The notes below the pieces were generated by a model that worked only from the letters and a program-made list of their open reading frames with translations, was not told where the DNA came from and ran no database searches. A stretch of 64,000 nucleotides of DNA from assembly GCA_002104905.1 (NCBI GenBank), contig MCFE01000006.1, positions 1-64,000 of the forward strand, given 5' to 3'. Of the stretch, positions 47,176-63,617 are shown piece after piece; position 1 is the first letter of the stretch, and each line of letters opens with the position of its first letter. This stretch comes from Basidiobolus meristosporus CBS 931.73. Taxonomy: Eukaryota > Fungi > Basidiobolomycota. Made by a program: the position numbers and the translations under genes.

Positions 47176-50100
47176 ATGTTGAGTCTACACAACGAAGAAC
47201 CCAACACAGGTCGGGATGAGGCATTAGTATTTCCCTCATCTCAACCAAAGGAGACCAACGGATTAACGTTTTCGCCAACGTTTCATTGCGTCCAAGAAAA
47301 AGTGGAGCACATGTCCTTGTTGATTCGTCAGGTACATACCCAACAGCAAACTTCAGAAGATGCTGTTGTTGAAGAGATTCGAGATCTCCTATTGGAGCTT
47401 CAAGGCTGTTTACCCCAGTCAATTGAAGCAGGCTCTAAGCGTAAACCAAAAGAAGCGGTGACTTTACAGGAGCAGACATCTCCTGAGGCTTTCGAGGATT
47501 ACACTCTGGCTAGGGAGATTTTGAAACAAAGGGTGAGAAATATTCGACCGCTATTGAATGACTTTGAACAAAGTTTTGGTCTGTTAAAATCGAAAACTGC
47601 AAAGGATACCAACTTGGAGTATCCATCTGCGGCGGCGAAAATCGATGGAATCGAGAAGTCACTCGAAATCGAACGTAAGAGAGTGAACGGCCAACTTACG
47701 TCGGGCGAAAAATACTTGGGACGAGTGGAAATCCTCGAACGAGAGGTTTTGAGTAAAGTGGCGGCAATAGAATCTCAAATCATGAGTAATTCCACCTTAA
47801 TAGAGGCTGACAAGTCCTTGATTGAGGATCAATTTACGCTGTTCCACGAAAGTTTCAAGTCACTAATTCATGTGAAAGAAATTCCTGAGCCAGAGTATCC
47901 ACCACAATCTCCGAGTCTACCATCGTTACAAGAAGATGTAGAGTCGGTGGAATCTAGCCACAGGGAGGTGGAGCTCATTGAGGCTGCGCAACGTGAAGAC
48001 GAGCTCACAAATACTATCCTTGTTTTGAACCAACAATTCGAGGAAGTCCAGAAACAGCTCTTTGAAAGCCAGCAGCACGAGACATTGCTTCAGAGTAGTT
48101 TTACAACAATCCACGCTGAAAACGTACAGCTGAATCAAAAGAATGAAGAGTTGATGAGAGATATCAGTGAAATGGAGAAGAAATATGCCGAATCACTGCT
48201 GGAGGCTCAATCACTTCAGTCTAGTTTTGAAAATGAGATTTCCATTTATAATGACAAAGTGATGGAGCTTGAGGAACAACTTGGGAACACTCAGATTTGC
48301 CTGAAGGAGTACGAAAATCACGAAGCCCACTTTTATTCTATGGCTGGAGCTTGGAATGCCGAGTTCAATGATATTAGAAATGCCCTTAGTGCAGCTAGCT
48401 GCAAAGAGATGCTTCTCGATTCGTTAATCTCTACCATGTTTTCTCTTCAAACTGAAGAAATTCAAGACGAGGAAGCTGAGACCACCTCCAATGATACCGT
48501 GACCATTGAAGGCCTAAATCAGCTGTTGGAGGAATTGAAGTCCAGCTTAAAGGAATCTAAGGATAGAGAGGAGTCGTTATCACTCATTAATCATAAGATG
48601 AATACTGAGTTGGAAGATGGAAGGATTCACCTCCAGCTAGTGGTTGAACACGCGGAAACCCTAGCAGACAAACTTCAAAAAGCCAATATTGGTCAGTCGT
48701 ACATCGATTCTGTCCATGAAAAGCTAAGAGATAGAGAATCGATAATAGCCAACCTTGAAGAGCAAATCTCTAACTTCGGCGCAAAAGAAACCGAGATGAT
48801 CGATCAAGTCCGAGTTCTGTCGGCGGAAATCCAAAATCTACAACAGAAACTGTCAGATCTGAACAAAGAGCGAGAGCAAACAATTACCCGTATGGTAGAT
48901 AAGCACGAGCTTCAAGACTTGCAAGAAGAGCTTCTCAGGACCCAAGAAAAATTAGGTACTGCCGAGGCTAAGGAGCTTGAGCATAATCAAATTGTTGCTC
49001 AGCTGAATTTTGAGCTTGAAAAGACGAAGGGTGTGCTTGACAGTGCATTTAAAAAAGTGGAGTTGTTTGACGCGACCATCCGGGACCTTAGCCTACAGTT
49101 AGAGGATTCTACAGCCAACGATATGGAGAGTGCGGATATTGTTAATCTACGGTCAGAGTTAGATGAGACCGTACTGCTACTTGCCCATTCAACTGAGAGA
49201 GAAGCGGAGCTTGAAAATACTATATCACAGCTTCGATCAGAGCTTGAAAGATTGGAGAAAGAGACACTGACCATAAGGAGCATTGGACAGGAGGAGAAAT
49301 CTGACCTGGATTCGAGTGAGGTTGAAATGAATGAAGACATGATGCTAAGCACTCTGTATGAGCTTAATCAAGAGTTAAACTCAGCCAGACAAGTCCAGTT
49401 CAAATACGAGTGCACAATCAATTTACTTGAGTCGGCAATTAGGGATAAATCGTTGTTTGAGGAGAGTCAGTACTCGCGTATTTACGAGCTTCAAAGAGAG
49501 CTGGAAGGGTATGATCACAAGGAAAAAGAATACCTGAAAGCTATGTTTGACTCCAAGTCAGAGCTCGAGAAAAAGAACCAACACTTGTTGGAATACGAAA
49601 CCAAGACACGTTTGCTAGAAGCGTATATTAACGAAAGCCTAGTACTATCCGAAGAAAAGGACAGCACTATCTCACAGTTAACGGAGGAACTTGCTACTGC
49701 CGAGATAACAGAAAACGAACATCGCAAATACTTGTTTGATGTCATCGAAGAGCTCAACCAAGTAACACTAACACTAGTGGAGCAAGAGAAATCAACTTCC
49801 TTGTTCGAATCATCTGTTTACGAAAAACTATCAGAGATCAAGCAGTTGAGCAATGCTCTCCCATCTGAAGAATTCGTATATGTTTCTCGGGCCGATTTGG
49901 ACTCTGTGAAAGAACGAGTTTCTGAACTTGAATCAGCAATTGACGCCCTTCGGGATGTTGTTGATTCCAAGAACCTGGAAATCCAAAATCTTCAGAACGT
50001 GCGTCTTGACCAAAACTCTAGCTTGGAGGAGCTTAATAAGGCATTTGCAACATTCATTCGCTCCCTCAAGAAGTATAAGGTGACCATTCCCAGCGAGTGT

Positions 50101-52308
50101 GAAGAGTTAGTTGCCCGTGAAAATGGCTCAGTTTCATCAGGTTTTGACGCCAAGAAATATATCTCTTCTATAAATGCAGTGTCAGTCGCGACAGAATCTT
50201 GGATCGTTGAAAAACAGACGTACCTCGGGTTGAAGGAAGCTGAGCTGGCCGAGTTGACGAAGACAACCGATGAACTACAACAGTCCTTGATAATTCAAAA
50301 GCAGCAGACGGCTGAGCGAGAGGCGCTTGTGATTCTTTTACAGAAAAGGGAGCACGAGCGTGTGGATTCAGGATCATCATCAAGCCCTACCACAAATGGT
50401 CAGGAGATGAATAGGAGCATATCCGCCGATTCTGTCGACTCTGATGTTGGTAGAGATGATTCAGCTTTAGCACATATCGATACAACTCACATCATGATTC
50501 CTGAGAAACTGGAGGCCATTGATATCAACAACTCAAGAAATAGCGTGTCGAGTCTTGATCACGACCGTGATTCTGCCGTAGCTCTAGATGATGAGTCAGA
50601 TGGAAGTGAGAACCGAAAGGCGCTTCCTTATTCGACCTCGGATTTAACCAACAAGTTGGCGGAGGCAAAGGCGCAAATACGCATTATAAAGGCTTCTCGT
50701 AGAGACATGGATGATCAATTACAAATATTCAAAAGCAAATTGAAGGACACCCTGGAGAAATTGGTTATTTATGACATTAATCCAGAATCTCTGGAGGTTT
50801 TCGTAACTGATATCAGTAGCACGCTGGAAGATCCTACCTCTCACATTGGAGACATCATTACATGCTTAGATAATCCCAAGCTTATTCTAGACACCAAAGA
50901 GGAATCTCGACGATTAACCTTTGGAAATATATCCGACAATACCACTACAGGTGATTTGAATTCAAAGCAGAGCGTAGCAACAAGAGGTCGCGCTTCTACT
51001 ATTTCTGGTAATAGTGTTCATGAAATTTCTAAACTCAAGAAAGACCTCAGCCTTTATGCCTCTGAGGTTGAGACTCTGAAGCTACAAAAGGAAAATTACG
51101 AAAAACAATGTCGCAGTTTCCAAGAAAACATCATGACATCGCAGACTCGGGAGGGTAAGCTCAATAGAGAAGTCCGAGAACTTCGGTCACGACTGGAAGC
51201 TCATAAAGTTGAGTCGATGAATGCCCTTACCGCACTTCAGGCGAAATATCGCGAGTCACTAGCTGAGGTCGAAGCCAAATGCAAACAACAGGTCGAGGAA
51301 TTGGAGAAGGAGCTATTCGTTGCCAAAAAACGAATCATTCGGCTTAAGGAGCAAGTCAGCTCAACGGAGAAAGTATGTGCCGATGCAGTATCTCTTACTG
51401 AACAATTAGAGACTGAATTAGCGCGTACCTGGAAAGAAAAGCGAACTGCAGAGAAACAACTATTGGAGTCTCAGCAACGATGCGAGGACTTGGGTAAGGA
51501 TCTTAGAGCTAAGGAGTTGGAGCTGATTTCACAGAAACAGTCCTACGATGCCAAGATCAAGGATATGGACCTGAAAATTCGTGACAAAGTGAAATCAATA
51601 ACAATCGCCCGCAGAGCAACAATTGTTAATTCTCCTGAAAAAAGAGGAAGCTTCTATCAACAACTTCGGAGCAAATGGACTGGAGGTGCTATTGATGAGT
51701 CTTACACCAGCAATCCGAAGGCCGTTCAAGAATTAGAAGTTCGTTTCCAAGATGAAGTGGATATGCACGTGGCAACCAACAGGTTGCTCCAGTCTGAATT
51801 GGCTGAAACTCAAGGGAAGAATGCCGAGTTGGAACAGATTAAGGAGGCCATCGAGACTCAACTCGCTGAATTACGCATCAATTATGATCAATCCGAAAGA
51901 ACTTTGGCTAAACTCAGGCGCGAGGCTGATGAAAATCAACGAGCCACCTTAGTTTCTCTTCAAAGAGCTCAGACTGAAAAGCAAAGCTCAGCACGTATCG
52001 AACTGGCAAATATCCAGGCCGAACGAGCATCTCAACAGCGAATCATATCTGAGCTCAAAAAGGAGTTATCCAATTTGCGTGATGAACAGCATGAAAGAAT
52101 GAAGGAATTGACAAGTGCCAAACAAGAAATCGAGGTTTTAAAGAGACTTTCAAATTCTGACGAAAATGAAGGAGTTTCTTCAATACTGGAGGTTCTCACT
52201 AGAGAAAAACTGATTTTGGAAACGAAAGTCAATGAGCTGGAAACCGAGTTAGATGATGTCTTGACGAAGAACGTGGATCTTGCAATGCAATTAGCCGCTA
52301 TCAAATAA
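47176..52308 (+). CDS. Uncharacterised 1710-aa coiled-coil protein
   Basis: Single uninterrupted 5.1-kb ORF, E/L/K/Q-rich heptads with Ser-rich breaks; no catalytic motif recognised. Confidence 0.85.
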   Translation: MLSLHNEEPNTGRDEALVFPSSQPKETNGLTFSPTFHCVQEKVEHMSLLIRQVHTQQQTSEDAVVEEIRDLLLELQGCLPQSIEAGSKRKPKEAVTLQEQTSPEAFEDYTLAREILKQRVRNIRPLLNDFEQSFGLLKSKTAKDTNLEYPSAAAKIDGIEKSLEIERKRVNGQLTSGEKYLGRVEILEREVLSKVAAIESQIMSNSTLIEADKSLIEDQFTLFHESFKSLIHVKEIPEPEYPPQSPSLPSLQEDVESVESSHREVELIEAAQREDELTNTILVLNQQFEEVQKQLFESQQHETLLQSSFTTIHAENVQLNQKNEELMRDISEMEKKYAESLLEAQSLQSSFENEISIYNDKVMELEEQLGNTQICLKEYENHEAHFYSMAGAWNAEFNDIRNALSAASCKEMLLDSLISTMFSLQTEEIQDEEAETTSNDTVTIEGLNQLLEELKSSLKESKDREESLSLINHKMNTELEDGRIHLQLVVEHAETLADKLQKANIGQSYIDSVHEKLRDRESIIANLEEQISNFGAKETEMIDQVRVLSAEIQNLQQKLSDLNKEREQTITRMVDKHELQDLQEELLRTQEKLGTAEAKELEHNQIVAQLNFELEKTKGVLDSAFKKVELFDATIRDLSLQLEDSTANDMESADIVNLRSELDETVLLLAHSTEREAELENTISQLRSELERLEKETLTIRSIGQEEKSDLDSSEVEMNEDMMLSTLYELNQELNSARQVQFKYECTINLLESAIRDKSLFEESQYSRIYELQRELEGYDHKEKEYLKAMFDSKSELEKKNQHLLEYETKTRLLEAYINESLVLSEEKDSTISQLTEELATAEITENEHRKYLFDVIEELNQVTLTLVEQEKSTSLFESSVYEKLSEIKQLSNALPSEEFVYVSRADLDSVKERVSELESAIDALRDVVDSKNLEIQNLQNVRLDQNSSLEELNKAFATFIRSLKKYKVTIPSECEELVARENGSVSSGFDAKKYISSINAVSVATESWIVEKQTYLGLKEAELAELTKTTDELQQSLIIQKQQTAEREALVILLQKREHERVDSGSSSSPTTNGQEMNRSISADSVDSDVGRDDSALAHIDTTHIMIPEKLEAIDINNSRNSVSSLDHDRDSAVALDDESDGSENRKALPYSTSDLTNKLAEAKAQIRIIKASRRDMDDQLQIFKSKLKDTLEKLVIYDINPESLEVFVTDISSTLEDPTSHIGDIITCLDNPKLILDTKEESRRLTFGNISDNTTTGDLNSKQSVATRGRASTISGNSVHEISKLKKDLSLYASEVETLKLQKENYEKQCRSFQENIMTSQTREGKLNREVRELRSRLEAHKVESMNALTALQAKYRESLAEVEAKCKQQVEELEKELFVAKKRIIRLKEQVSSTEKVCADAVSLTEQLETELARTWKEKRTAEKQLLESQQRCEDLGKDLRAKELELISQKQSYDAKIKDMDLKIRDKVKSITIARRATIVNSPEKRGSFYQQLRSKWTGGAIDESYTSNPKAVQELEVRFQDEVDMHVATNRLLQSELAETQGKNAELEQIKEAIETQLAELRINYDQSERTLAKLRREADENQRATLVSLQRAQTEKQSSARIELANIQAERASQQRIISELKKELSNLRDEQHERMKELTSAKQEIEVLKRLSNSDENEGVSSILEVLTREKLILETKVNELETELDDVLTKNVDLAMQLAAIK

Positions 52309-53527: not shown

Positions 53528-55639
53528 TTACTGAGGCGACTTGCAGACCTCAGCAATAATTTGCTTTGCTCTTTCATATCTAGCAGCTTGCAATGGACAC
53601 ATTGCAACCTCTCGGGGTTTCCCTCCAGAAAGGTTTTGAATCTTTTCTCGAACCACGTCATAGCTGAAAGATTGGAACCTTGCGTTCATTTCATGAGGGC
53701 TGGTGTTTGGTGCAAAATTGGCAATTAACCAAAAACCCCATTCGTCTACTATGGACAACAACGTTGCTAGGAGTAACATTAGGGCATGAATCAGTAGATT
53801 ACCAATAGAGCTTACACATGCTACATCCAATGGATGTGTCATTTGGGAGTGGTTACTGGTAAACGGCATTAGCGAGAGGACTTTCATTAAGGGATACTTT
53901 CTCTGAATCTTCTCTATGGTATCGGAAGGAACATGCGAATGAAGAATTAAAATGTCACAACTACCAAGTTCGAGAGCGGTCTGCAAATCTTTTGCTGGGA
54001 TTACACTGACATTTTTGTTATCCTATAAGAGTAAGCATAAGAATATGGCAGCAAGGAAGTGAGATCATGTCACATGAGGGGATACCTGATTTTCTTTCGA
54101 GTCATCGGCAACAATTAATACAACGAGCTCAGTTTCACAAGACTCCATTAGGTCGCTTATAATCGACTGAAGCTTCGCAGTATCTTGCTTTTTTTGAGGA
54201 TATAATCGCCGGATGCCAACCATAGAGCGGAGCACCACTCCTGTGCTTTGATATCCAGATTTCAAGTTCATTCCTGTTTGCAGGAGCGATAGGAACCCTG
54301 CTATGTTGTTGCAGGACCATACACCTTCTGTGAAACTTGCACCCAATGCTAATGTCGGCTTCTCTTCAAACACCCATTTAGTGAAGAAGGTGTAGCTAGT
54401 TAAGTGGATCGTAAAATCAGGCTCTGTTTCCCTTGTGGGCATGTAGTTGACATAGATCGGTTTTGCAGATGGCTCTGGCATAAACAGCATGACGGATTTT
54501 TTCTCGTGTATGCAGGCTTTGTGTAGAAAGTCCACAACTACTCGAAATGCATACCTATCATGCTAATACATCACTACTTGCTCGCATCAGGTAATTCACC
54601 ATCACTTACCTCTCGAGAAAGGTTGCTTGCTGTTTTACAATGGTTTCTTCTACTGGATCAGGTCGAGGATATATCTTCAGGCATTTTCTATATGCTAAAA
54701 GGGCTGCTTCGTACAGGATACGTGGGAATGTCAGGAAAGCTGTAATCGGATACCGGACTAAGATGCAGCATAGTGTAAAGCTAGTAAGCGGGTACTGCTT
54801 TCCGTTGAGTATTGCTACAAGTTTTTTGATTTCTTGGGTTTGGTACCCATGTGTTGCTTTCAAGGAACTGTCTTCATCAGCATTTGCATAAACAATGATT
54901 TTGATGTCGTGATAGCCAAATTGGGGATCTCGAAGGTGAATCTCATAACTTCCATTTCGATCATTGAATGGAGATACATGGAAAGAGCGATGGATTTTGA
55001 AAGTTGCATCATAGCTTCAAGCACAAGACAAATTAGAATGGAATTTCGATTTCCTGGAAACCTTACTTTCACATACCCCTTACGCGGTTTCTCCATTGCC
55101 TTGCTGTTGTCCAAAATATAAAGGTGCTTTTCCCCGAATGTGTTGCTGACCTCTAAAACAACGATTTGAAGCTGCTTTGTTCCATCTATTTCACAGCAAT
55201 AACAGTAGTATATGGATAGAGGATTGAAGGCGTATCCAAGAAACCTAGGTGTAGTTACTAACTCAATGCTTTGTATCCTTTCGGTGGAAATTCCCTAAAT
55301 ATGCCACATACATTAGTATAGATATCTGGTGTAATTCAAACGTTGAAGACGCACTCGCTCATGAAGCCTATACAACAGCTTTCTCTTTAAGGTAAAATGT
55401 CTCCCTTCTTTCACTGGAACGTCACCCAAGTAGTCCTTGTACCATAAGGAGTAAATACTCCTTCGGTTATATCCAAACAGCAGATTGCCCCAACTTGAGT
55501 GGCTCTGTGAATCCTCTTCCAATAGATCCAAATTCACCCCAAAGTAGAAAACATCATATGCAAAAGAATGCTTAGAGGGAAGGAATCTCGCGTGATATGT
55601 TTTCCCAAGGTATACAGTATGCGTCTTTGGAAGTGGCAT
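53528..55639 (-). CDS. DUF1365 (COG3496; UfaO-like) protein with long C-terminal extension, multi-exon
   Basis: YLGKTYHARFLPSKHSFAY, TTPRFLGYAFNPLSIYYCY, VLEVSNTFGEKHLY and TFPRILYEAALL..K.LKIYPRP are DUF1365 motifs. The 3' exons splice in frame (..KENQ|DNKNVSV..). Confidence 0.85.
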
Positions 55640-56377
55640 ATTGATTGACAACTTGGTGCCGCTTAGGGCTACTTGAATATTTTCAGCGGGATCTGTGACT
55701 TTCGAATTTGCAGAGTATCATTGGCCAAATCCACTGACGGGTAAGAATCGACCTGGGTAACATGGATAGTGATCAATCAATAGAGGATCGATTTCAAGGA
55801 TTAGGTGGCTTGTACTTTGTGTTCAATTTTCCAGGCTCCGGTGATAGGTATAGACTCCTCATCGGCGATACTGACCAAAAATAATGGATCGGAAGTCCCT
55901 TTAATTAATCACGTTCAACCAATATGGTTTGTACATCATCATTGAGATGGTTTGATAAGTAGTGAGCATCGCCAAATCGAAAGTAGCTATTTTCGATGCC
56001 GATTTGGTGACCTCCACCTTTCTTGATATAGCAAGCACTGTATTGAAACTAGGAGCATGAGTCAAATTTCAGTCACATCGATCTTCCAGTTATGAGGTGA
56101 ATATCTGATCTGGAGTTGTTTCAACACCGCATTACCATGATTTCCTTCCAAGATAACCATCGTAGGTAACCACAATACTGAACTCGTGCAGAAACAAATT
56201 CTTGCGATGTATGGATATAGCTTTCAATTATCATCCGTAGTTCAACATGAGCATTTTCAGACCGTATTTTCAGATCGGGGTGATTGCTCATTCTGGTTAC
56301 AAGGCCGTTTAGTATTTAATTGATGCCTGTCTGACAATCCAGCGCTCAATCATCACCTCCAAGCGCACGTTGTACAC

Positions 56378-57879
56378 ATGGATCTTAGCAAGAAGAGCAA
56401 AATTTTAGGAGCTACAGAATGGTTGGCCCTGAGTGCAAAAAATTTGGTGGTGAACTCGTCGTGGAATCCTCTAGTTACCTTTGGTACCAGTCTTCTAAAG
56501 AATTTCTATACTTTCTACTAACGAAGGCGATTCTGTAGCCCGCAACCTTGTCCTGGAGCTTATGAGCAAGATTGAAAATGGGCATATCTGTATAATGACA
56601 AAAGACTATATCTACGAATATGGTACTTGGAAGGAGGGAAGTGATATGAACGTGAAGGTCAAGGTTCTTGATGACAAATTTTGGATCCGTTTATTGATGC
56701 TAGGAGATTTGGTAAGTATATCTAGTATGATGAGCAAACAAGATGTGCTAACACTCACTTAGGGCTTTGCAGAATCCTATATGTACGGTGAGAGCACAGT
56801 CAACGATTTGGTATCTCTCGTTAAGGTATCCACTGTTGTTTTCGTCTTCATTTGGAACCATATTCTGATCTCTGTGGTCTCAGCTTTTTGTAGCGAACCG
56901 CGAAATACTGAATGATGTACAAACAAAACACTCTACAGCAATGAATATTTTCAACTCGATTATCAACTCGCAGTTTGTTAACTCCATTGCGAACTCTATT
57001 CATAACATCAGTGCTCATTACGACCTAGGAAATGACATGTTCTCTTCGTTTTTGGATGAGACGATGACTTACTCCTGCGCCATATTTGAAAATGAACAGG
57101 AAAGCCTCAAAGATGGACAATTACGGAAACTACACACTATGATTAGAAAAGCTCGGATTACATCTGCAGACCATGTCCTTGAAATTGGGACCGGTTGGGG
57201 ATCATTCGCAATCGAAGCTGTCAGGCAAACCGGCTGCAAAGTTACAACATTGACTTTGAGTATTGAGCAGAAAAAATTGGCAGAAGATCGGATTGCTGAA
57301 GCTGGCTTCACTGACAGTATCACGGTACTCCTATGTGACTACCGTAATATTGAGGCCCATCATCAGTTTGATAAGATTGTTTCAATTGAAATGATCGAAG
57401 CTGTAGGCCACGAGTTTCTACCTACTTTCTTCAAAACGTGCGATCAACTGTTGAAACGGGACAAGGGGATTTTGGCTTTGCAGGGAATCACCATGCCGGA
57501 GTCAAGATATGACAACTACTGCCATTCGGTTGATTTTATCAAGAAGCACATATTTCCGGGCGGTCATTGTCCTTCTGTGACTGCATTGATCAATGCCGCC
57601 AACAAAGGTTCTGAAGGCCAACTGATTTTGGAGAATATGGAGAATTTTGGACCCCACTATGCTAGAACTCTCAGATTATGGCGTCAAGAGTTCCTGGCTT
57701 CCTACGACGAATTGATTGAAAGTAACCAAAACCCTGTCTATGATGACGTTTTCAAACGTAAATGGGAATATTACTTTGCCTACTGTGAGGGGGCTTTTAT
57801 CACCAAGACAATCGGGCTTGTGCAGATGGTGTTCACAAGAATCAACAACACAGAATTTCTAGAAGGTGTACCCCTCTGA
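56378..57879 (+). CDS. Cyclopropane-fatty-acyl-phospholipid synthase family SAM methyltransferase (Cfa/UfaM-like), 449 aa, 4 exons
   Basis: Exons 56378-56483, 56527-56711, 56763-56825 and 56884-57879 are in frame. Motifs: NISAHYDLGNDMF, MTYSCAIF, VLEIGTGWG, DKIVSIEMIEAVG, FIKKHIFPGG, HYARTLRLW, WEYYFAYCEGAF. Confidence 0.95.
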
Positions 57880-58211
57880 ATTTAGACCGTCTCGGAAATT
57901 CTGTAGTCTTATATAATCATTATAAATTTATTAAATATCTAAATAATATAAACCACTACGTCAACTCCATAAACTTACATCGCTTGGTATATTTCACATG
58001 AATATTCTAGTCACAGATAATTTCTCCACATTAGCATGATCATGTCAAGTATTGAATAAATGTTTCAAGCTGTGGCCCACGCGAAATAGTAGCAAACCCA
58101 ACGGCAAGCGCTTTCGTAACTAAATTTACCATTTTGTATCATGTACATTCGTGTATATCACTAAACAAATATACACTTGGTTATTGCCATTCCGATGATA
58201 TTTTATTGAGC

Positions 58212-59811
58212 TTAGTTCTTGGCCTTGTAATTGGCTCGACTGGAAGGTTTTCCTGGCTGTCGACCTGTCAGGAACATGTACAGTAGGGATACTCCCCATA
58301 AGATCAATGCTAACATGATATCGAAGTACCTGAACAACTTTCTGTTTAAGAACGATGCAATACCTTTGGGGGTGTTTCGAATATGAGTGGCATCAATAAC
58401 CTGGAAGGGTGGGGAGGCCCCTAGTTTCAGTGCCACTTTTAGACCAGATGTAAGACCATCTTCGTGGAACCCATAGTTCGTCCATGCTCCACAGAATGAC
58501 GTGTCAGTAGACTGAATCTTGTGAAGCTCTTTTTGAGCTTCAATTAGTCCTTTGTTATACGTAGGATGCTCATAGAGGTATTCCCCAATGATCGATTCCG
58601 GCTGAGGCTCATAAGGGGGATTTAATGTTACGAAGACATCGCCGTATTTTTCAGTATCAATTGATTGTAGGAGGTTCATCCAATATGTCAAGGCAACGCT
58701 ATTGATACTTGAGCCATTAGAGTCCGATGTGGCTAGATAATTCCAACTCGTCCAGGCCTTTCTTCGGATTGGCATTAAAGCGCGATCACAATGCAAAAGT
58801 GCTCTGTTTTTGGAATACAGAACCTTACTGAGAATATCCTTCTCCGCATCAGTTGCTGAACTCCCTAGTATTCGGAGTGTCTGATCACCATGAGTAGCAA
58901 ATACCACGTGATCATATTCATCCTCCTTCCCAGTGCGATCTTTCACGATAGACTTTCCATCAGCAGTTCGGGTAACGGAAATTACTTCTGTTGAAGTACG
59001 AACATCCTTCAATTTTTCAACGACTTTCTTGACATAGTTACGGCTTGAAAATATAGTATTAGATGGAGTGCTGGACAATACACTTGTGATATTTGCTACG
59101 TTACCTTCCGTTCTTGACGGTTAACCATTGGGGACGGTTGGTAATTTGGAGTAGACAATGGTTGTGCATGAATTTGATTAGGGTATAAGCGGGAAACTCC
59201 AGACTACACTTGTCCGGAGGAGTAGACCAGATCGCAGCCGTCATGGGCAACAGGTAGTTTCTTCGGAAGGCTTCCGAGTAATTTCTTCGATCAAGAAATT
59301 CTCCAACAGTTAGCTCACGATCAGGATGGCCTTCAGGTAGGGCTATGATATCGGTAGCTTCGAAGTTGAATTTTATTATATCATACACAGTCCGCCACAT
59401 ATCAACTGAGGTGATATTTTCATGCTGTGCGAACACAGTAAGCAAGTTGTTCCCGGCCCACTCGAATTTACCCCTGTCTCTGGATACGGAGAAGGACATA
59501 TCTGAATTGATGTACTCCACTTCAAGATGCTTGAAGAACTGCAATAGGTTTGGATATGTGAGATTGTTGAAGACGATGAAGCCCGTGTCTACAGGGATTT
59601 TGCTGCCAACATTCTTTGGCTTTGTATTCCCCATTTCTCCTGAGGACCGGGTAGCAATGGAACAGCTTGGAACGCAATAATCAACGGTGTGTGTATGGCC
59701 ACCAACGTAATCATCCTTTTCATATAGAGTCACCTCATGGTTGGAGTGTTCACTCAACGCCCAAGCAGCTCCTAGACCGGAAATTCCAGAACCAATTATT
59801 GCAACTCTCAT
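58212..59811 (-). CDS. FAD-dependent oxidoreductase (COG2907 amine-oxidase-like; UfaD-like), intron 59044-59104
   Basis: MRVAIIGSGISGL (GxGxxG), GGHTHTVD, VDTGFIVFN..TYPN, MSFSVS, PMTAAIWST, WTSWNY, YEHP and FCGAWTNYGFHEDGLTSG; C-terminal hydrophobic anchor. Confidence 0.92.
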
Positions 59812-61043: not shown

Positions 61044-63617
61044 TTAGAAAATGTAGTAGTCTTGAGACATAGGTAACGTATGTGCCGGCTCACATATGCA
61101 AAGTTCACCATTTGCATACACTTCTTTTGATTCAGGATCTACTCTAAGTTCAGGCATGGCATCGTTGTGTATCATATGTTTTTTGGTAACATTACGGCAA
61201 TTCTTCACAGCAACCGGTTTCTTATTAAGTTTGTAACTCTCGATTTTACCAGAATCGATAGCTGCCTGACTGGTTAGGATAACGGAACCATATCCAACAC
61301 CATGTCCACGAGCTCCATACATTTCACGGCCGATCATAGGCTCAGGCGTAGGGATAGAGCCGTTAGCATCTCCAACAACAGCCCATGGGATGATTCCACC
61401 TTTGATGATTAACTCAGGCTTCGTTCCGAAGTTAGCTGGAGTGTACATCACCATATCGGCCAATTTTCCTACTTCAATGGATCCGATGATGTGGCCTGCT
61501 CCGTGAGCAATCGCAGGATTGATTGTGTATTTGGAAACGTATCTCTTCACTCTGAAATTATCGTGTGTACAGTCTTCTTCTTCTCCGGGGCAACTTAAGT
61601 GACCTCTTTGTTGTTTCATCTTATGTGCGGTTTTCCATGTTCTGGAAACAACTTCACCCACTCTACCCATGGCTTGTGAATCTGACGATATGATACTGAT
61701 AGCACCAATATCATGCAAAATATCTTCAGCGGCGATAGTTTCCTCTCGGATACGCGACTCAGCAAAGGCAACATCTTCAGGAATATCTATACTCAGGTGA
61801 TGGCACACCATTAACATATGTAGATGCTCGTCTACAGTGTTGACAGCGAATGGCCTAGTAGGATTTGTGGAAGAGGGGATTACACAGAGTTCGGAACAAA
61901 CACGGATGATATCTGGAGCGTGACCACCACCAGCACCTTCTGAATGATATGTATGAATAGTACGGCCTTTGAATGCTTCAATGGTAGCATCAACAAAACC
62001 AGATTCATTTAAGGTATCTGTATGAATAGTTGTTTGAACGTCCATCTCGTCACAAACACTCAAGCAGTTATCAATGGTAGCAGGAGTAGAGCCCCAGTCC
62101 TCATGAAGCTTTAGTCCAATGCATCCAAATTCGATTTGCTCGCGAAGAGGAGCAGGGTCAGAACAATTTCCTTTGCCAGTGAAACCGAAGTTTAGCGGAA
62201 TGTCGTCAGTGGATACCATCATATATTCAACATGGAATGCGGCAGGCGTGCAAGTAGTTGCTTTACTACCAGTATTAGGTCCTGTTCCACCACCAATCAC
62301 TGTGGTGATTCCACTACTCAAGGCTTCATAACACATCTGGGGACAGATAAAGTGGATGTGAGTATCCACAGCACCGGCCACAAAGATGTTTCCTTCACCA
62401 GCAAGTGCTTCAGTCGAAGCACCAATGATCATTCCGTCAGTTACGCCGTCCATGATGTCAGGGTTTCCAGCTTTTCCAATTCCAACAATGTATCCGTCTT
62501 TAATACCGATATCCGCTTTGATAATGCCGCTATGATCCACGATAATGGCATTGGTAATCACCAGGTCCAGACAATTATCATTCAAGGTATGGGTGGATTG
62601 TCCCATACCTTCACGTATGACTTTTCCTCCGCCGAAGACGCATTCATCACCATAAACCGTAAAATCCTTCTCGATTTCAATAAAGAGGTTGGTATCGCCT
62701 AGTCGGATACGATCGCCGACAGTTGGACCAAACATATCCTTATAAACAACTCGTGGGATCGAGAAGGGGATGGGTGGAGCAGATTCAAACTCCTGCTTGG
62801 CATGGCGGAATCCACGCTTTTCGCATGTCGCGATGATTTCGGGGATTCGCTTCTCGTCGTATTCGCCAGTAGCGATATTGTTTCCTCCTGATATATATTT
62901 CTTACCGCCAATCTTCACGAGGGTTACGGTTTTAGAATCACCTGGCTCGAAACGAACCGAAGTTCCAGAAGTAATATCCAGTCTATATCCATAGGCACGG
63001 CCTCGGTCGAACTCGAGCTCACTATTTGTTTCGACGAAATGGTAATGAGAGCCTACCTGTAACATGACGAACATTAGAACATTGGATGGATTAATCAGCA
63101 TTATACTACTCACCTGAATCGGTCTATCACCCATGTTAGTAACTCTGAGGGAGATTCTGTCTCTGTCTGGGACCATGATAATGTTTCCAGGTCGTGGAAT
63201 AACTGCACCTGGTAAGCTATATTCATCTACAGGTAATGGTACAGGGAATGCATCCATCTTGGGGATCGGGAAGAAACTGCCATACAGAGCCAATTCAAGA
63301 TTCCCATCGTCCGTACAAATAGGGTCTTGGATAGCTACCAAGAATGTACCATCTCTGAACGTACCCTCCACATGCACTTCGTGTAGAGTCCCCAATACGG
63401 AGGTTAAAACGTGGCGACGACCTAACAGATGTCTACCTATATCCATAAGCTCAGACACGCTATGATTTCCATCCCTGATGAATTCGAGTATTTGTGAAGC
63501 AATAAGTGCAGTCGCTTCCGTGTGGTTGAGTCTCACCCCTCTGGCAAGACGTTTCTGGGCGAGAAAGCCGACCTGGTGAATAATCAACTTGTCTTGCTCT
63601 CTGAAAACAAGATTCAT
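61044..63617 (-). CDS. URE1: Urease, single-chain eukaryotic gamma-beta-alpha fusion, ~838 aa after removing a 57-nt in-frame intron (63057-63113)
   Basis: [78 protein letters not shown] and SSDSQAMGR include all Ni ligands. Confidence 0.97.

Follow-up and report, generated by a model that had tools for sequence, protein, structure and literature searches.

A gene cluster in the fungus Basidiobolus meristosporus with the three protein families of the bacterial furan fatty acid pathway

Furan fatty acids, which occur in fungi, plants, algae and fish, are potent scavengers of radicals. To our knowledge, the genes for their biosynthesis have been proven only in a few bacteria; among eukaryotes, candidates have been proposed solely by homology, in Arabidopsis. 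In Rhodopseudomonas palustris, the genes RPA2571-2569, encoding UfaD, UfaO and UfaM, are sufficient for synthesis of 9M5-FuFA (PMC7380195), and the operon-type methylase of Halomonas gives 11-methyl-12-octadecenoate as its product (PMC12089945). The chemistry proposed for Rhodobacter sphaeroides comprises methylation, desaturation and O2-dependent furan closure on phospholipid-bound chains; in this organism UfaM is encoded outside the operon, whose resident CFA-like gene, RSP1089, is dispensable (PMC7380195). An earlier note on the DNA described here drew its comparison with R. sphaeroides. The families and the proposed chemistry are the same, but with UfaM unlinked and RSP1089 dispensable there, R. 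palustris or Halomonas is the better bacterial model. A literature search returned no paper on the fungal cluster that we describe below.

Within the window (the whole 64-kb stretch of Basidiobolus meristosporus CBS 931.73 DNA that was analysed), a DUF1365 gene, a CFA-family methyltransferase gene and a COG2907-type FAD oxidoreductase gene adjoin one another, all intact and all intron-bearing (Table 1). The gene models are homology-based, and every splice junction in the three genes is crossed by unbroken homology; the four introns of the DUF1365 gene are all GT-AG and 55-63 nt long. Our model of the FAD gene is identical to the deposited protein P0121. The deposited models of the other two genes are shorter, that of the DUF1365 gene having 303 aa and ending within intron 3, and that of the CFA-family gene having 391 aa and starting at 56595. 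We prefer the longer models because their C-terminal and N-terminal modules, respectively, are conserved in other fungi. Given the head-to-head layout of the DUF1365 and CFA-family genes, the region between their start codons is a plausible candidate for a shared promoter, while the CFA-family and FAD genes converge, with 332 bp from stop to stop. The earlier note had described three adjacent, intact, spliced genes, separated by ~740 bp on the divergent and ~330 bp on the convergent side, and these estimates were borne out (738 and 332 bp), as was its assignment of the products to a UfaO-type DUF1365 protein, a CFA/UfaM-type methylase and a UfaD-type COG2907 FAD enzyme.

Table 1. Coordinates of the genes, exons and protein modules at the Basidiobolus locus, numbered from the first position of the window.
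Feature	Position	Strand	Size or residues	Remarks
DUF1365 (UfaO-like) gene	53528-55639	minus	623 aa	
DUF1365 gene exons	55639-55355, 55294-55077, 55014-54610, 54554-54086, 54022-53531	minus		stop 53530-53528
DUF1365 domain	54610..55639	minus	about aa 1-300	predicted closed beta-barrel
Lipid-binding-type module	54260..54554	minus	about aa 303-400	start of extension; like CFA synthase N-terminal domain, SCP2 fold
Hydrophobic segment	53720..53830	minus	aa 524-560	C-terminal module of extension; from hydropathy scan
Intergenic region	55640..56377		738 bp	between divergent DUF1365 and CFA start codons; candidate shared promoter
CFA-family SAM methyltransferase (UfaM-type) gene	56378-57879	plus	445 aa	
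CFA-family gene exons	56378-56483, 56539-56711, 56763-56825, 56884-57879	plus		three introns
COG2907-type FAD oxidoreductase (UfaD-type) gene	58212-59811	minus	512 aa	
FAD gene exons	59811-59105, 59043-58212	minus		one intron

The same three families stand side by side in bacteria, in line with the operon parallel drawn previously: the order FAD, DUF1365, CFA was found in 77 of 80 loci. This bacterial sample covers alphaproteobacteria only, and R. pseudopalustris, a close relative of R. palustris that is among the loci, served as proxy for the characterised UfaM/D/O. Whole or partial clusters are also present in five further fungal genomes, as the earlier note had guessed. Rhizophagus has FAD, an unknown gene, DUF1365 and CFA; Calcarisporiella has DUF1365 and CFA, with a second methylase copy away from the cluster; Dimargaris has DUF1365, a CNMT-like methylase and FAD; and the chytrids Phlyctochytrium planicorne and Batrachochytrium have FAD, DUF1365, CFA, a CNMT-like methylase and DUF1295. 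The head-to-head DUF1365/CFA pair recurs in Rhizophagus and Calcarisporiella. Together with Basidiobolus, linkage is seen in six fungal genomes belonging to five deep lineages. While the dispersal of the genes in Cordyceps, Phlyctochytrium arcticum and Pseudohyphozyma would be expected if their adjacency were coincidental and the three had unrelated roles, the recurrence of that adjacency across these six genomes and in nearly all of the bacterial loci makes such a coincidence very unlikely. In Dimargaris and the chytrids, the additional methylase of the cluster belongs to the coclaurine-N-methyltransferase type (6gkv, E 1e-37), which has been equated with FufM, the maker of dimethyl furan acids (PMC10940516). 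There is no FufM-type gene within the Basidiobolus window, and no DUF1295 homologue was found in the 80 bacterial flanks.

Synteny and phylogeny, which had been proposed as checks, showed conserved linkage and a single fungal clade for each family. The fungal FAD, DUF1365 and CFA families are each monophyletic (SH-aLRT 97-99), and the topologies of the FAD and CFA trees roughly follow the fungal phylogeny; the three families show old vertical inheritance within fungi. In the CFA-family tree, for which E. coli Cfa was the sole outgroup, the fungal and operon-type bacterial enzymes form separate clades. A recent bacterial transfer into Basidiobolus was considered and rejected, given the introns, the fungal best matches and the fungal clades in all three families. 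As to the earlier description of the cluster as operon-derived, an operon origin is no more than plausible; the fungal sequences of each family form a single old clade, and gene order is only partly kept.

The CFA-family protein consists of a CFA synthase-type N-terminal domain, alignable with those of fungal and bacterial homologues, and a CMAS catalytic domain (Pfam CMAS, E 7.7e-80); a protein atlas search with the methyltransferase returned generic CMAS clusters only. Identity is 58% to the Rhizophagus orthologue, 33% to the operon enzyme of R. pseudopalustris and likewise 33% to E. coli Cfa. At 32-33% identity to either side, the protein stands no closer to E. coli Cfa than to the operon-type enzymes, nor the reverse, and its product is not assignable by similarity alone. 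Of the residues that make up the bicarbonate site in E. coli Cfa, Cys139, Glu239 and Tyr317 are retained, but the bicarbonate-binding His266 is replaced by Gln, as it is in 24/24 fungal orthologues and 8/8 operon-type bacterial enzymes examined, and E-A-V stands in place of the E. coli E-H-V in all of these except Coemansia (EHV). The protein scores 227.5 bits against the NCBIfam model of the Cfa equivalog (NF008686), which has a 400-bit cut-off, and thus departs from a canonical Cfa both in this score and in its incomplete bicarbonate set. The Gln signature is presumably also carried by the oxidase-fused enzymes of cotton and Sterculia.

These features bear on whether the methyltransferase might be a true cyclopropane synthase, with the FAD and DUF1365 proteins processing cyclopropane acids, to cyclopropene or chain-shortened forms, or stabilising the synthase. 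The three retained bicarbonate-site residues are compatible with this, and oxidase-fused plant enzymes do make dihydrosterculate, their activity being reduced, without being abolished, by removal of the oxidase domain (PMC3132707); Cfs1 of Coprinopsis, a member of this family, is also annotated as a cyclopropane synthase (PMC10282164). However, the exchange of His266 for Gln is shared with operon-type enzymes, of which those of R. palustris and Halomonas give methyl-alkenes, and no cyclopropane acids were obtained from the operon-type enzyme of Agrobacterium or from the GhCPS3/Arabidopsis clade (PMC3132707). The FufM-type methylase that accompanies the cluster in chytrids and Dimargaris fits furan acids better, and a literature search did not yield any record of these fungi producing cyclopropane acids. 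On balance, we regard a cyclopropane synthase as the less likely, though a serious, alternative.

The FAD enzyme combines a Rossmann motif for FAD binding, located N-terminally, with a domain of the amine-oxidase type (Pfam NAD_binding_8, E 1.1e-14, and Amino_oxidase), and it resembles the operon homologues over its full length, sharing 45% of residues with its Hoeflea counterpart and 43% with that of R. pseudopalustris over about 450 aa, as expected of a UfaD. The reaction that defines UfaD is the desaturation of 11-methyl-12-trans-18:1 to the 10,12-diene. Its relatives bear the JGI label 'predicted NAD/FAD-binding protein'. A C-terminal hydrophobic tail (aa 472-497) was detected. Of 13 fungal orthologues scanned, 12 have such a tail, and four proteins of bacterial length all lack it. 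The FAD and CMAS parts are not fused as in plants, being encoded by the separate, convergent genes described above, 332 bp apart.

In the UfaO-like protein, an extension that is specific to fungi lies C-terminal to the DUF1365 domain; fungal relatives of the protein are mostly 500-780 aa long. Both halves of the domain are recognised by Pfam DUF1365 (PF07103), at profile positions 2-72 and 176-235, in exons 1 and 3, and the protein has every residue that is invariant among 39 aligned sequences, His24, His152 and the V-S-P-F motif among them; identity to the R. pseudopalustris counterpart of RPA2570 is 30%. The genomic context is also that of UfaO, the adjoining genes being those of the UfaD-type FAD enzyme and the CFA-family methylase. 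The domain was modelled by AlphaFold2 with a mean pLDDT of 89.5 and a pTM of 0.90. Foldseek and a wide VIA search found no clear solved relative of this fold and weak barrel analogies only, the best being nitrobindin, Rv2717c and OlmO-type barrels (Z 5.7-6.3). Since these matches are weak, with Z up to 6.3, we did not infer a function from the fold. DUF1365 has been listed as a hypothetical haem-binding family in a computational preprint.

The extension begins with a lipid-binding-type module that matches residues 28-117 of the CFA-like protein in profile-profile comparison (probability 95.6%, E 1.3e-8). In the predicted model this module has block-mean pLDDT values of 82-97, and fold comparison ranks the Aquifex CFA synthase 7qos first (probability 1.00, E 0.011), with SCP2 domains next. 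A Pfam single-sequence scan of the extension gave no match; its likeness to the CFA N-domain and SCP2 is detectable only by profile-profile and fold comparison. A degenerate methyltransferase domain was looked for in the remainder of the extension and not detected. Further downstream, a module with the motif ...ANFA...P..., which aligns with fungal orthologues, surrounds a hydrophobic segment that probably serves membrane association, judging from its hydropathy. Some DUF1365 orthologues have an N-terminal membrane anchor; an upstream exon that might encode one in Basidiobolus was rejected, the intergenic region having no hydrophobic ORF.

We consider it somewhat more probable than otherwise that the three genes constitute a fungal UfaM/UfaD/UfaO module leading to a methylated furan fatty acid; the chemistry, substrate, cellular location and co-regulation of this module are what we infer. 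The substrate would be an unsaturated acyl chain that is modified while ester-bound in a lipid of membranes or lipid droplets. The CFA-family enzyme would add the methyl group of SAM to the cis double bond and release a methyl-branched trans-alkene with no cyclopropane ring, the FAD enzyme would desaturate the methyl-alkene to a conjugated methyl-diene, and the DUF1365 barrel protein would close the furan ring with O2, yielding a methylated furan fatty acid that may scavenge radicals or singlet oxygen. The tail of the FAD enzyme, and the fused lipid-binding module and hydrophobic segment of the DUF1365 protein, could represent adaptations to eukaryotic membranes. In Chlamydomonas, CFA, CNMT-like and DUF1365 genes are co-induced by singlet oxygen (PMC4067076). 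Synthesis of a furan acid is supported because furan fatty acids (9D5 >> 9M5) have been published for Pleurotus and about 20 other fungi (PMC9883336), because the active-site signature of the CFA-family protein is common to operon-type methylases, unlike E. coli Cfa, and because a FufM/LIME-type methylase occurs in the chytrid and Dimargaris clusters. On these same grounds the earlier note's reading of the locus as a source of furan or methyl-branched acids is partly supported, though it is tempered by the cyclopropane acids that plant oxidase-fused enzymes make.

The bacterial substrate, cis-vaccenate, is scarce in fungi, and Mts1/Smt1 enzymes have N-terminal transmembrane helices. The first of these points would suit a module that acts on another lipid, for example a sphingoid base, or that stops at a methyl-branched or conjugated acyl chain and never forms a furan; so would the occurrence in fungi of several CFA-like orthogroups, including Mts1 C9-methyltransferases (PMC10282164; PMC11993586), and a DUF1365 domain without known cofactor or mechanism. 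The Basidiobolus CFA-family protein and most of its orthologues, however, appear to lack the Mts1-type N-terminal helices and to have a soluble CFA synthase-type N-domain instead, a hydropathy scan having found no hydrophobic helix in the Basidiobolus protein or in most orthologues, and the linkage to DUF1365 and FAD genes parallels the bacterial acyl-chain pathway. A different lipid or an earlier end point appears less likely, and we retain a furan fatty acid as the preferred product.

More tentatively, all of these observations could be read jointly: early-diverging fungi may retain an ancestral cluster that is the genetic basis of fungal 9M5/9D5, in which the form of UfaO, possibly haem-dependent, arose from a DUF1365-CFA synthase fusion. 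In its chytrid form, the cluster so envisaged has five genes (UfaD-, UfaO-, UfaM- and FufM/LIME-like, and DUF1295), and the eukaryote-specific fusion remnant in UfaO keeps only the lipid-binding N-domain. The three genes and their linked fungal orthologues are the best current candidates for the genes of fungal furan fatty acids. A conserved fungal cluster with all the families of the bacterial pathway, and in chytrids and Dimargaris a second methylase, provides a short, testable gene list, with entry points in the well-studied fungi Batrachochytrium, Rhizophagus and Cordyceps and candidate parts for the production of furan or branched fatty acids in yeast. It is also an example of a metabolic gene cluster maintained since early in the evolution of fungi, and it adds to the UfaO family a previously undescribed domain architecture, DUF1365 plus a lipid-binding module.

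Compared with described systems, the Basidiobolus methyltransferase has the two-domain architecture of E. coli Cfa (N-terminal lipid-binding plus CMAS) at 33% identity, but differs from it in Gln for His266, E-A-V for E-H-V and a score below the NCBIfam cut-off, and the E. coli cfa locus has no FAD or DUF1365 partner genes. UfaM (RSP2144), UfaD (RSP1091) and UfaO (RSP1090) of Cereibacter (Rhodobacter) sphaeroides belong to the same families as the Basidiobolus proteins, but UfaM is unlinked there, whereas the Basidiobolus CFA-family gene adjoins the others. In R. palustris (RPA2571-RPA2570-RPA2569) and Halomonas (ufaD/ufaO/ufaM) the three families lie side by side, as in Basidiobolus, and the methylases of the R. 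palustris type have the exchange of His266 for Gln in common with the fungal enzyme. In contrast to both, the Basidiobolus genes are interrupted by introns, run in mixed orientations and have separate promoters; the FAD enzyme bears an extra hydrophobic tail at its C-terminus, and the DUF1365 protein has an extension of ~320 aa that includes the lipid-binding module. The oxidase and CFA families are likewise associated in Sterculia SfCPS and cotton GhCPS1/2, but these synthases are fusions and proven cyclopropane makers (PMC3132707), and no involvement of DUF1365 is known for them. Arabidopsis AtUFAMD1 (AT3G23510), AtUFAO1 (AT1G30130) and LIME1/AtFUFM1 (AT4G33110) are eukaryotic homologues of these families, found on lipid droplets, for which a role in furan fatty acid synthesis is proposed and unproven (PMC10940516; PMC13247531); the plant FAD enzyme and methylase are fused and no cluster has been reported, whereas Basidiobolus has three separate, adjacent genes.

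Gene models rebuilt from the sequence, with homology as the sole basis for their splice sites, bear out the earlier note's description of three adjacent intact genes and give the same ends and spacings that it had reported. The start codons of the DUF1365 and CFA-family genes are divergent across 738 bp, a stretch that is a candidate shared promoter, and the stops of the CFA and FAD genes are convergent across 332 bp. Pfam agrees with the families assigned there, calling DUF1365, CMAS (E 7.7e-80) and an FAD-binding enzyme of the amine-oxidase type. The methyltransferase exon finds its top hit, at 100% identity, in a deposited B. meristosporus CBS 931.73 protein from contig MCFE01000006.1. Judged against the rebuilt models, two of the genes are truncated in the deposited annotation: the deposited DUF1365 model (303 aa) terminates within the intron 3 donor site, ~320 aa short, and the deposited CFA model (391 aa) begins at an internal Met, which costs it 54 aa of the N-terminal domain. 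Three observations favour the longer models: most fungal DUF1365 relatives measure 500-780 aa; exons 4 and 5 of the DUF1365 gene encode the two modules of a C-terminal extension, both of which align with fungal relatives; and the methylase N-terminus aligns with Rhizophagus and other orthologues through the first intron. No further lipid genes were found among the genes flanking the cluster in the window.

Features of the Basidiobolus locus (window positions) and of loci from other organisms (L handles)
Feature	Position	Strand	Description
DUF1365 gene	55639-53528	minus	five exons, four GT-AG introns of 55-63 nt, 623 aa; rebuilt from sequence
CFA-family gene	56378-57879	plus	four exons, 445 aa; rebuilt from sequence
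FAD gene	59811-58212	minus	two exons, 512 aa; deposited protein P0121 identical
Part missing from deposited DUF1365 model	53528-54609		
Part missing from deposited CFA model	56378-56594		
First ~100 residues of DUF1365 extension	54260-54554	minus	
Upstream flanking gene	47176-52308		1710-aa coiled-coil protein
Downstream flanking gene	61044-63617		urease; intron-bearing
Rhizophagus gene between FAD and DUF1365	L003:3676-5722		632-aa protein without Pfam family
Dimargaris xerosporica cluster	L093:8980-18408		
Phlyctochytrium planicorne five-gene cluster	L092:7340-18164		DUF1295 = membrane protein
Batrachochytrium dendrobatidis five-gene cluster	L094:1646-11856		DUF1295 = membrane protein
Hoeflea DNA photolyase gene	L008:6550-8004		overlaps start of FAD, DUF1365, CFA operon

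Compared with E. coli Cfa, the Basidiobolus methylase keeps Cys139, Glu239 and Tyr317, carries Gln where Cfa has the bicarbonate ligand His266, and reads E-A-V for E-H-V. Gln occupies the His266 position in 24 of 24 fungal orthologues and in all eight operon-type bacterial enzymes aligned, that of Rhodopseudomonas pseudopalustris included, and E-A-V is found in every aligned fungal and operon-type enzyme except that of Coemansia (E-H-V). The Basidiobolus and R. pseudopalustris methylases both score well below the NCBIfam Cfa-equivalog cut-off. This signature and these scores place the fungal methylase, by sequence, in a subfamily associated with FAD and DUF1365 partners. Another substrate or end point for the module is a less likely rival; for one such identity, the sphingolipid C9-methyltransferase Mts1, the lack of N-terminal transmembrane helices in the Basidiobolus methylase and most orthologues would speak against membership, such helices being an Mts1 trait.

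Membership in the subfamily leaves the product unfixed, because the methylase is 32-33% identical to E. coli Cfa and, equally, to operon-type enzymes, and because the oxidase-fused synthases of cotton and Sterculia make cyclopropane acids; enzymes of the GhCPS3/Arabidopsis clade and the Agrobacterium operon-type enzyme, however, yielded none (PMC3132707). Cyclopropane-type products are a less likely but real rival. Of the candidate end products, a methylated furan fatty acid has the most support, with chances slightly better than even, and the three genes very probably form a single acyl-chain-modifying module homologous to UfaM, UfaD and UfaO.

Fungal members of two of the families have features of their own. 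Scanning found a C-terminal hydrophobic helix in 12 of 13 fungal FAD orthologues, that of Basidiobolus included, and in none of four bacterial-length proteins. The DUF1365 domain is modelled as a closed beta-barrel (pLDDT 89.5) with no clear solved relative, the best matches (Z ~6) being nitrobindin, Rv2717c and OlmO-type barrels; a computational preprint puts DUF1365 down as a hypothetical haem-binding family, which is no more than a lead. When profiles were compared, the opening ~100 residues of the extension matched the N-terminal domain of the CFA-like methylase (probability 95.6%, E 1.3e-8), and their model finds its best fold match in Aquifex CFA synthase, with SCP2 lipid-carrier domains next. 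On these profile and model matches, the barrel of fungal DUF1365 proteins is directly followed by a predicted homologue of the CFA-synthase N-terminal lipid-binding domain, with an SCP2-like fold. In the metagenomic proteins P0429 and P0433, DUF1365 is joined to a CFA synthase N-domain (Pfam DUF7884) and the beginning of a CMAS domain, and the fungal architecture could be a remnant of a fusion of this type; of the CFA-synthase portion, the N-domain alone was recognised in the Basidiobolus protein. Many fungal DUF1365 orthologues (proteins P0242, P0244, P0246, P0247, P0249, P0251, P0254 and P0394) have a hydrophobic N-terminal helix; the Basidiobolus protein has none, its hydrophobic segment being internal (aa 524-560).

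Orthologues of all three families occur in chytrids, Zoopagomycota, Glomeromycotina, Mucoromycota, Ascomycota and Basidiomycota. In the trees that the earlier note had proposed, each fungal family forms a single clade (SH-aLRT 99 for the FAD enzymes, 97 for the methylases and 99 for the DUF1365 proteins), and the branching of the FAD and methylase trees roughly matches fungal phylogeny; this marks the genes as ancient and vertically transmitted within fungi. Fungal monophyly and these topologies rule out a recent transfer into Basidiobolus.

Similar gene sets, thought possible in other fungi, are indeed clustered, wholly or in part, in Rhizophagus, Calcarisporiella, Dimargaris and two chytrids, so that linkage holds in five other fungi but not in Cordyceps, Phlyctochytrium arcticum and Pseudohyphozyma, where the trio is dispersed. 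The order in Rhizophagus irregularis is FAD, an unknown gene, DUF1365 and CFA, the last two head-to-head like the Basidiobolus pair. DUF1365 and CFA are also head-to-head in Calcarisporiella thermophila, where a 104-aa gene, possibly a mis-called exon, is called between them; of two CFA paralogues there (loci L004, L010), the protein P0012 alone pairs with DUF1365 and the second lies outside the cluster. Dimargaris xerosporica has DUF1365, a second methylase, a DUF938 methyltransferase and FAD together, and its CFA orthologue maps to another contig, too short for linkage to be judged. In P. planicorne and B. dendrobatidis, FAD, DUF1365, a second methylase, the CFA orthologue and a DUF1295 protein lie within ~10 kb. 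With 6gkv as its best solved match (E 1e-37), the second methylase found in the clusters of the chytrids and Dimargaris belongs to the coclaurine-N-methyltransferase type, a family that includes Arabidopsis LIME1, 38% identical to bacterial FufM, which converts monomethyl to dimethyl furan acids (PMC10940516). No FufM/LIME-type gene was found within the Basidiobolus window.

Furan fatty acids have been reported from Pleurotus eryngii (9D5 >> 9M5 > 7D5) and, according to a survey cited in the same paper, from ~20 fungal species (PMC9883336). Among the genes that singlet oxygen induces in Chlamydomonas by a SAK1-dependent route are CFA1, one resembling coclaurine-N-methyltransferase and one for a DUF1365 protein (PMC4067076), and for Cfs1, a CFA-family member of Coprinopsis, strong induction by blue light has been reported (PMC10282164). 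The existence of eukaryotic homologues as such was pointed out in 2020, and the Arabidopsis proteins received their names in 2024 (PMC7380195, PMC10940516, PMC13247531); our literature searches found no published description of the fungal trio or cluster. The interpretation in the earlier note is, as a whole, partly supported, and the cluster opens eukaryotic furan fatty acid biosynthesis to direct testing.

That the same families form bacterial operons was confirmed: among 80 loci, all alphaproteobacterial, obtained by scanning genomes with a DUF1365 profile, an ORF and BLAST survey found FAD, DUF1365 and CFA in that order in 77. Derivation of the fungal cluster from a bacterial operon is plausible because this order persists in chytrids and Rhizophagus, the loci compared being alphaproteobacterial and fungal. 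On a Hoeflea contig, a photolyase gene, the FAD enzyme, DUF1365, a CFA-like gene and an MFS transporter follow on one strand, and the photolyase overlap hints at a light-related operon. In Halomonas the ufa genes are consecutive (n = 3), and the operon-type methylase yields 11-methyl-12-octadecenoate in E. coli (PMC12089945). Rhodobacter sphaeroides, previously taken as the model, shares the families but not the linkage, as its UfaM lies outside the operon and the operon's CFA-like gene RSP1089 is dispensable (PMC7380195). The Basidiobolus proteins are 43% (FAD), 30% (DUF1365) and 33% (methylase) identical to those of R. pseudopalustris, one of the 80 surveyed loci; in its close relative R. 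palustris, RPA2571, RPA2570 and RPA2569 (UfaD, UfaO and UfaM), which were used to complement the R. sphaeroides ufaM ufaD ufaO triple mutant, suffice for the 9M5 furan acid and its intermediates (PMC7380195).
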